From sequence record PP886230.1: a stretch of 64,000 nucleotides of DNA, one strand, 5' to 3'. Below are positions 53,649 to 53,816 of the stretch, in pieces; within the stretch, counting starts at the first letter, position 1, and each line of letters starts with the position of its first letter. The position numbers were made by a program, and so were the translations under genes. Below the pieces are notes generated by a model, which saw only the letters and a program-made list of their open reading frames with translations, did no database searches and was not told where the DNA came from.

Positions 53649-53816
53649 ATGAAAGATATTTTTACAATAGATGCTAACGTTATATATGATTTTTATCTTA
53701 CTGGTGGTGTAAAGGTAACGGGTACTGTGATTGATGTTTGTGATAATGGTATAATCTTAAGTGATGGCACTAGAGTTGTCCAAACACACATCATTATGTT
53801 TGTCCCACATGTATAA
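53649..53816 (+). CDS. Hfq/Sm-like small protein (55 aa, not in ORF track)
   Basis: Manual translation [55 protein letters not shown]; resembles Hfq [10 protein letters not shown]...ILL...[12 protein letters not shown]. Confidence 0.6.

Follow-up and report, generated by a model that had tools for sequence, protein, structure and literature searches.

A helix-less acidic 55-residue protein with a predicted Sm/Hfq fold, encoded behind nrdB in Rak2-like jumbo phages

The locus and its public annotation

The stretch of DNA analysed here, 64,000 nucleotides (nt) of sequence record PP886230.1 (one strand, 5' to 3'; hereafter the window), carries directly behind the ribonucleotide reductase gene nrdB a small open reading frame (ORF) of 55 amino acids (aa), which an earlier note, made from the letters alone, had proposed to encode an Hfq/Sm-like protein. 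The ORF is present at 53649..53816 on the + strand with an ATG start, and its translation is exactly the one quoted there. Structure modelling leads us to predict with high confidence that the product is a minimal Sm fold, composed of five bent strands and no N-terminal helix, whose closest counterparts among solved structures are bacterial Hfq proteins. When the 801 nt at 53400-54200 were compared with public phage genomes, Escherichia phage SP27 matched them at 100% identity and another 22 phages of the PBECO4/121Q group at 96-100%; these are jumbo phages of ~350 kb in the genus Asteriusvirus. The features of the locus, all on the + strand, are the following.

52474..53598, + strand: nrdB, class Ia ribonucleotide reductase beta subunit (ORF list; annotation of 121Q, PBECO4 and 12 other relatives)
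53611..53637, + strand: intrinsic-terminator-like hairpin with an 8-bp stem and a 3-nt loop (hairpin 53611-53629), plus T-tract (scan)
53638..53641, + strand: weak Shine-Dalgarno sequence GGGT, 8 nt before the ATG (sequence; mostly GGAG/GGA in orthologues)
53649..53816, + strand: 55-aa helix-less acidic protein of predicted Sm/Hfq fold (PHROG 17251; 121Q gp34, PBECO4 gp470)
53821..53850, + strand: predicted sigma-70-type promoter with extended -10 element, TTGGAA-18-TGcTATAAT (scan; conservation)
53879..54112, + strand: 77-aa neighbour protein, PHROG 16437 (ORF list; synteny)

The ORF had been described as unannotated, which turned out to be wrong: it corresponds to 121Q gp34 (YP_009101628) and PBECO4 gp470 (YP_009150784), is named in most public records under the label "membrane protein" or "hypothetical protein", and is left unannotated in a few records only (RaK2, phAPEC6 and slurp01). 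Its match to PHROG 17251 has an E-value of 1e-31. We also noticed that in OQ708376.1 (phage vB_EcoM_CRJP21) the features at the place where nrdB and the ORF match bear the names dihydrofolate reductase, structural protein and ribonuclease HI, which suggests that the product names in that record are displaced by several genes.

Expression signals

In every relative annotated (121Q, PBECO4 and the 12 others) nrdB lies immediately upstream of the 55-aa ORF. The ORF is situated, as the note had placed it, between the nrdB stop (53598) with its terminator-like hairpin on one side and the promoter-like site at 53821-53850 on the other, and the ribosome-binding site is indeed weak in this window (GGGT), while most relatives have GGAG or GGA at 8-11 nt before the ATG. 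When the spacer between nrdB and the ORF was folded sequence by sequence in 13 genomes, a stable hairpin was found in all 13, with dG of -10.6 to -17.2 kcal/mol and z of -2.9 to -5.3, and in most of them a U-tract follows it directly. Because these hairpins are built from at least five different stem sequences, it is the structure that is conserved rather than the sequence, that is, by compensatory change.

Directly past the stop codon of the ORF, TGnTATAAT is found in all 14 genomes compared, and as judged from the sequence this promoter is the start of the next transcription unit. The 55-aa ORF must, on the same grounds, be the last cistron of nrdA-nrdB, transcribed by read-through from nrdB unless an internal promoter has gone undetected. 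Since the ORF has no promoter of its own, the hairpin at 53611..53637 is probably a leaky terminator or an mRNA-stabilising element. A similar hairpin (52425-52444) precedes nrdB itself, so such hairpins are not tight terminators and the expression level of the ORF is not deducible from them. Apart from this nrdA/nrdB hairpin, a further terminator-like one with a 13-bp stem occurs after the MazG-like gene (55253-55281). Altogether four terminator-like sites were found in 3.1 kb where shuffled sequences lead one to expect 0.9, and hairpins stand at nearly every gene boundary of the block.

A conserved gene of the Rak2-like clade

The conservation suggested as a check on the ORF was readily found. 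A tblastn search matched it once per genome in 71 phage records, down to ~33% identity, in phages infecting Escherichia, Salmonella, Klebsiella, Erwinia, Serratia, Yersinia, Pectobacterium, Cronobacter and Xanthomonas, whereas a word-index protein search returned four close relatives. On this sequence evidence the gene is clade-specific, and its distribution is that of the whole Rak2-like jumbo-phage clade. No paralogue was seen, tblastn at E<=10 giving a single place per record, which makes hetero-rings of paralogues unlikely. A hidden Markov model (HMM) search of 1.84 billion representative sequences gave 27 proteins at E<=1e-3, about 20 of which are small orthologues (49-95 aa); the long matches, mostly Sushi/Ig repeat proteins, were taken as chance.

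The reading frame of the 55-aa ORF is the only one open in all 15 sequences compared (the window and 14 orthologues), and an overlapping antisense ORF is not conserved. For unsaturated pairs dN/dS is 0.10-0.38 (Nei-Gojobori), and all differences from 121Q within the ORF are synonymous (pN = 0, pS = 0.14). By these sequence measures the ORF is a genuine gene under purifying selection.

Gene order is the same in all 13 genomes inspected: nrdA, nrdB, the 55-aa ORF, the 77-aa protein, a virion protein gene where present, and a MazG-like gene. The virion structural protein gene between the 77-aa and MazG-like genes is missing (at ~2970) in Hallingskeid (Erwinia, L012) and EJP2 (Escherichia, L013), so the trio of nrdB, the Sm-like ORF and the 77-aa gene is more tightly conserved than the rest of the block. 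In the 77-aa neighbour the N-terminal half is acidic and the C-terminal tail is rich in Lys and Arg. Like the 55-aa ORF it was found in 71 phage records, distributed over the genera in the same way, and it is a possible partner of the 55-aa protein. In 121Q and PBECO4 the neighbour is annotated as 87 aa (264 nt, 53849-54112), in most relatives as 77 aa. The upstream ATG at 53849 falls inside the conserved -10 hexamer TATAAT (53845-50) and a strong GGAG precedes the ATG at 53879 by 7 nt, which makes the 77-aa start the likely one.

Two further observations concern the nrd genes of relatives. In Yersinia phage fHe-Yen9-04 (L009:255-2422) nrdB is annotated as two pieces, g298 and g300, with a 245-aa ORF between them, which suggests an intron or intein carrying a homing-endonuclease gene. 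In GAP32, CBB, XbC2 and EJP2 (L007, L008, L011 and L013, ~540-1310) an extra ORF of ~230-260 aa lies between nrdA and nrdB, and in GAP32 it is labelled 'endonuclease'.

Predicted fold

The AlphaFold2 (AF2) model of the 55-aa protein, computed from a 7-sequence alignment, is an all-beta, five-stranded barrel with a predicted local distance difference test score (pLDDT) of 87.5. The strands are predicted at residues 12-17, 21-31, 34-37, 42-44 and 48-53, and residues 1-11 form a coil with pLDDT of ~68. As a test of the robustness of this prediction, the orthologue from GAP32 (68 aa, 35% identical) was folded from a 25-sequence alignment and gave the same topology with pLDDT of 87.3, residues 1-11 again being coil.

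Searched against the PDB with Foldseek, both models returned Hfq in all of their best 50 matches, and those of the 55-aa model come from E. coli, Salmonella, Neisseria, Pseudomonas, Aquifex, Listeria, Caulobacter and others. In the tightest alignments the root-mean-square deviation (RMSD) from Hfq is 0.9-1.0 Å over 45-46 residues for the 55-aa model (TMq 0.67-0.82, identity 24-34%, E-values 2.6e-3 to 7e-3) and 1.2-1.4 Å over 46-48 residues for the GAP32 model. Taking both models together, TMq is 0.60-0.82, E-values are 1.6e-3 to 7e-3 and identity is 21-34%, with RMSD rising to ~7 Å in the longer alignments. A viral structure library gave as best matches the CBB orthologue together with various small phage barrels that are uncharacterised.

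At the level of the models, then, the Sm/Hfq fold proposed in the note is borne out, each model having only Hfq chains among its 50 best PDB matches. The possibility raised there that the predicted fold might be a non-Sm SH3-like barrel is not what the models show, with neither an SH3-like nor an OB domain among the 50 nearest solved folds, and the N-terminal helix, thought to be short or absent, is absent from both. A strictly conserved glycine in the middle of the bent beta2 strand is a hallmark of the Sm fold, and the N-terminal helix is dispensable to it (PMC3710371). Among 30 family members, on which all residue counts below are based (with the numbering of the 55-aa protein of this window), 28 keep this glycine as G25, inside the predicted strand 21-31.

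Relationship to Hfq and other small barrels

Pairwise, BLASTP aligns the protein with E. coli Hfq at 36% identity over 39 aa (pairwise E of 0.007) and reproduces the Sm1 pattern YLxxGxKxxG pointed out earlier, pairing Y16 with Y25, L17 with L26, G20 with G29, K22 with K31 and G25 with G34 of Hfq; H47 is also aligned with H57. The Sm2-like ending H-x-I-x-x-x-P, likewise pointed out, is present in this protein, but it is one residue shorter than the H-A-I-S-T-V-V-P of Hfq, and neither its H nor its P is conserved in the family.

Profile methods give a similar picture. Comparison by hhalign of the 30-member alignment with an Hfq core alignment reached 36.6% probability over 30 columns (25-37% overall), against 0.3% and 0.1% for the T4 controls. 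On the E. coli Hfq core the family HMM reaches 12.6 bits, and none of 5000 shuffles exceeds 9.4; with an Hfq HMM, 12 of the 30 members lie above the 99th percentile of shuffles. When the 30-member profile was run against PDB sequences, Hfq was the top family at E = 0.17 and made up 22 of the 30 sub-threshold hits, and the others include further small barrels, among them IF-1 and the C-terminal region of BirA.

A second resemblance was found in the bacterial repeat protein P0026 (192 aa, DUF5666/DUF1344), where a repeat is 50% identical to a 24-residue stretch of the 55-aa protein (positions 23-46, beta2-beta4) through the shared motif G-x-V-x-x-x-D-x-N-x-I-x-L-x-D-G-x-x-I-P. The DUF5666 repeat reaches 75% against the family by hhalign and 13.8-15.0 bits by HMM, above all shuffles. 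No family member reaches the Pfam DUF5666 model. A sequence search for a solved structure of DUF5666 and a look for its function found none, and the lead was set aside since it explains nothing yet. The P0026 motif may connect Sm-like barrels with a Pfam domain that is uncharacterised, or it may be a convergent beta-hairpin pattern.

Judged by sequence, the likeness to Hfq is slight, yet not random. We place the family among the Sm-like small barrels, with Hfq as its closest kin in fold; its specific descent from Hfq is plausible.

Residues kept, lost and conserved

In place of the Hfq helix with its Q8, R16, R17 and R19, the N-terminus of the family carries an acidic-aromatic D-I-F-x-F-D motif free of arginine. 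F42 of Hfq aligns with the invariant G34 (BLASTP) or with N33 (gapless hhalign). The change of the Hfq Y-K-H to QTH that had been noted in this protein extends to the family as [QT]-[DAS]-[KH], in which Q or T stands for Hfq Y55 and mostly D, A or S for K56 (position 45, Q18/T11; position 46, D14/A6/S5; position 47, K14/H8/S4). Neither the proximal uridine pocket of Hfq (Y-K-H plus F/Y42) nor the set of distal-face A-R-N residues (Y25, I30, K31) is found in the family. Y16 and K22 are kept here in columns that are otherwise variable (V10 Y6 T6 at position 16; K9 Q9 V3 at position 22), and G20 stands at the position of Hfq G29.

The putative pore position 47, equivalent to Hfq H57, holds a basic residue (K, H or R) in 23 of the 30 members. 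D32, a candidate for the conserved loop L3 Asp of Sm proteins at the position of Hfq D40, is D in 14 and E in 2, and position 33 is N in 22 and D in 7, with the BLASTP and hhalign alignments differing by one residue here. Around loop 5 there is a polar cluster, position 42 being H or R in 25 members and position 45 Q or T in 29. The D-I-F-x-F-D arm and [HR]42, [QT]45 and [KH]47 are the only conserved polar features. The beta5 strand, I-[LVI]-[YFM]-F, is hydrophobic at consecutive positions, a pattern compatible with burial on both faces, and the N-G of the family is most simply read as a type I' beta-turn. An iron/ferredoxin role like that of E. coli YfaE, encoded downstream of nrdB, was ruled out, as the family has no conserved Cys/His ligands and 0-1 Cys per member.

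A number of results weigh against an Hfq-type fold or an RNA-related function and should be set beside the evidence above. No Foldseek E-value against Hfq is <= 1e-3. The AF2 alignments are shallow (7 and 25 sequences) and the network was trained on Hfq structures, so that the predicted structure is not independent of the sequence resemblance. The Pfam check called for in the note went against it, the 55-aa ORF having no match at E<=10 and none of the 30 members matching Hfq or LSM at E<=5; NCBIfam gave no match for the family either, and the search of 1.84 billion representatives reached no Hfq and no domain fusions at E<=1e-3. At the sequence level the DUF5666 repeat fits the family at least as well as Hfq does. 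The most conserved positions are the turn-formers G20, G25, N33-G34 and D39-G40 and the core hydrophobics, a pattern that speaks mostly of the fold and not of a binding site. With S, M or N at position 47 in 7 of the 30 members, the putative pore residue is not essential. The proximal, rim and distal residues of Hfq are missing from the family. Finally, 29 of the 30 members are net-negative (-1 to -11), with isoelectric points (pI) of 4.0-6.0 compared with 8.4-10 for the Hfq core, and this acidity, calculated from sequence, argues against general RNA affinity.

Comparison with known systems

With bacterial Hfq (PDB 3RER, 1HK9, 2YLB) the family shares the predicted bent five-strand barrel (in the best alignments 0.9-1.4 Å over 44-48 residues at 24-34% identity), the beta1-beta2 pattern Y-L-x-x-G-x-K-x-x-G in this phage, the mid-beta2 glycine and the frequent basic residue at the H57 position. 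It differs in having no helix, F42 or Y-K-H, in a loop 4 two residues shorter, in ending without a C-terminal tail, in being acidic instead of basic and in falling below detection by Hfq HMMs.

[quoted passage not shown] Like the 55-aa family they are phage-encoded, are predicted to form a helix-less five-strand LSm-like barrel and have no BLAST similarity to Hfq (PMC12152347), and Frd.2 is also located within a nucleotide-metabolism gene cluster. The T4 proteins are 13-17 kDa and combine the barrel with a C-terminal domain, their nearest structures being FeoA-type SH3 domains with Hfq among other close relatives, whereas the 55-aa family is a bare barrel (49-95 aa) whose models have exclusively Hfq as nearest structures. 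Kinship with T4 Frd.2 and T4 NrdB.1 was rejected on the hhalign values of 0.3% and 0.1%, respectively.

An Sm-like pentamer of putative cyanophage origin from a marine metagenome (Das et al. 2009, cited in PMC3710371 and PMC12152347) is, as described in the citing papers, a phage-associated Sm fold without an N-terminal helix, which indicates that the fold can do without this helix and that Sm proteins occur in phages. By the same description it is set apart by a C-terminal helix and by forming pentamers, and it is absent from the top 50 Foldseek hits. The archaeal and eukaryotic Sm/LSm proteins are of the same fold class, are often acidic, form rings and hold RNA at loop 3 and loop 5 pore residues. 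Their uridine pocket, made of aromatic-x-Asn (loop 3) and Arg-Gly (loop 5), is not conserved in the 55-aa family, which has no Pfam LSM match. DUF5666/DUF1344 (PF18914, PF07076) resemble it through the P0026 stretch and differ in being tandem repeats in bacterial proteins, with a match that covers less than half of the domain.

Canonical Hfq, that of E. coli, has no match among the PHROG families. In the Sharanji, fEgEco12 and CBB genome papers, term searches turned up no mention of Hfq or Sm-like proteins, and the 55-aa family is mentioned neither in these papers nor in that on the T4 LSm-like proteins (PMC12152347).

Possible modes of action

The mode of action that we place first is a tentative one that may well prove wrong, namely an Sm/LSm-type mechanism, unlike that of canonical Hfq, comprising a ring, a ligand at the loop-5 pore and the N-terminal arm. 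The protein would form a homo-oligomeric ring through pairing of the beta4 and beta5 edges, as Sm proteins do. The beta4-loop5-beta5 segment with [HR]42, [QT]45 and [KH]47, which lines the RNA-binding pore in Sm rings, would bind the ligand, and the D-I-F-x-F-D arm, at the place of the Hfq helix, may take part in the binding. The most likely ligand would be the U-rich, single-stranded end of an RNA transcribed from phage or host, and the role would be an accessory post-transcriptional one in early or mid infection. As the rim and distal-face residues are missing, no Hfq-like annealing of small RNA (sRNA) to mRNA is expected. The phage LSm-like-fold proteins with suspected RNA roles offer a precedent for an RNA role (PMC12152347).

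As for RNA partners within the window, the note had pointed to a candidate RNA at 4753-5240. An Rfam scan of the whole window gave no family anywhere, that candidate included, so that the sequence lends no support to an RNA partner. The region ~4627-5462, which overlaps the candidate, is ORF-poor, with no ORF of at least 40 aa but one 45-aa ORF starting with TTG. The wider suggestion of a phage translation-control system shared with IF3-like and KTSC genes fared no better. These genes exist (PBECO4 gp458 and gp456) but lie 6-8 kb off with no sign of linkage, being separated from the 55-aa ORF in PBECO4 by MazG, two opposite-strand virion or membrane genes, dihydrofolate reductase, RNase H and the Dda helicase.

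A second reading, possible though doubtful, is that of a small acidic beta-barrel adaptor that binds protein and has no RNA role, the likeness to Hfq being one of small-barrel architecture only. The acidic barrel and the D-I-F-x-F-D arm would then dock on a basic partner, which could be the tail of the 77-aa neighbour, ribonucleotide reductase or, by nucleic-acid mimicry, a host nucleic-acid-binding protein. The uniform acidity of the family and the loss of the Hfq RNA-contact residues fit this reading, as does the N-terminal arm, which is conserved yet modelled in the monomer at low pLDDT (~65-68), as a docking peptide would be. The basic-tailed neighbour accompanies the ORF across the 71 records, and small barrels other than Hfq (IF-1, DUF5666 and the C-terminal region of BirA) are among the sub-threshold sequence hits. 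Wild-type T4 GoF showed no strong post-transcriptional effect on a reporter (PMC12152347), which speaks for an adaptor and against an RNA-binding ring; against a ring there is also the lack of support from AlphaFold 3 for multimers in the T4 LSm-like family (PMC12152347). The structural comparisons point the other way, since two orthologues only 35% identical both find Hfq alone among their 50 nearest solved folds, at 21-34% identity and with no SH3-like or OB domain. The partners, moreover, remain candidates, adjacency and co-occurrence being true of every clade-specific core gene.

Two readings direct the protein against host Hfq. The first, which takes up the note's idea of poisoning, is that of an antagonist or decoy, and it seems to us unlikely: an Hfq-derived subunit unable to bind RNA would co-assemble with host Hfq or its protein partners, cap them or compete with them, and host sRNA regulation would be shut down in this way. 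Host Hfq is the closest relative in fold and in sequence, the RNA-binding residues are lost while the ring-making beta4/beta5 edge strands are kept, the acidic surface could engage the basic rim and proximal face of Hfq, and the hosts of the clade are mostly Enterobacterales, whose Hfq cores are closely similar. Hfq hexamers are, however, abundant and very stable, which makes poisoning through mixed rings within one infection cycle kinetically unattractive. An ORF that has no promoter of its own, lies behind a terminator-like hairpin and has a weak Shine-Dalgarno sequence in this phage also argues against stoichiometric titration, and a proline in beta4 (position 44) in 20 of the 30 members removes one backbone donor for pairing between subunits. 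A related scheme, which we regard as quite unlikely, has the acidic Hfq-fold subunit dock on or co-assemble with the host Hfq ring, or sequester its partners, through the D-I-F-x-F-D arm and the beta4/beta5 edges, so that host sRNA regulation is turned off or redirected.

That the protein is, in line with the note's other idea, a bona fide Hfq-type RNA chaperone, annealing phage sRNA-mRNA pairs on proximal, distal and rim faces, is very improbable. The predicted fold is Hfq-like and this protein does keep Y16, G20, K22 and H47, the counterparts of Hfq Y25, G29, K31 and H57, but positions 16, 22 and 47 vary in the family, which is acidic, fails Hfq HMMs, has no helix, Q8 or arginine rim, has F42 replaced and has mostly Asp for K56. 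The membrane protein of the RefSeq and PHROG 17251 labels can practically be dismissed, because the label, probably the product of transmembrane predictors reacting to hydrophobic beta-strands, is contradicted by a maximum 19-residue Kyte-Doolittle mean of 0.37-1.62 among the 30 members (usually ~1.0, with Gly/Asp turns interrupting), by two AF2 models that are all-beta soluble barrels without a helix, and by an N-terminus unlike a signal peptide.

Significance

What is new here is a predicted minimal, helix-less and acidic variant of the Sm/Hfq fold in Rak2-like jumbo phages, a reading of the fold that the models support. The phage proteins of LSm-like fold that we found described are the T4 GoF/MotB.1/Frd.2 family (2025) and one metagenomic cyanophage Sm-like structure. 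In practical terms, the "membrane protein" mis-annotation propagated in RefSeq and the PHROGs is corrected. Should the protein indeed act against host Hfq, it would be the first phage-encoded structural Hfq mimic used against Hfq. A 55-70-aa barrel that is nearest to host Hfq, has lost most of the RNA-contact residues and sits at one locus in every Rak2-like jumbo phage offers a small system in which two questions can be put to the test: whether large phages manipulate the riboregulation of their hosts, and of what a minimal Sm fold is capable once its helix is gone.

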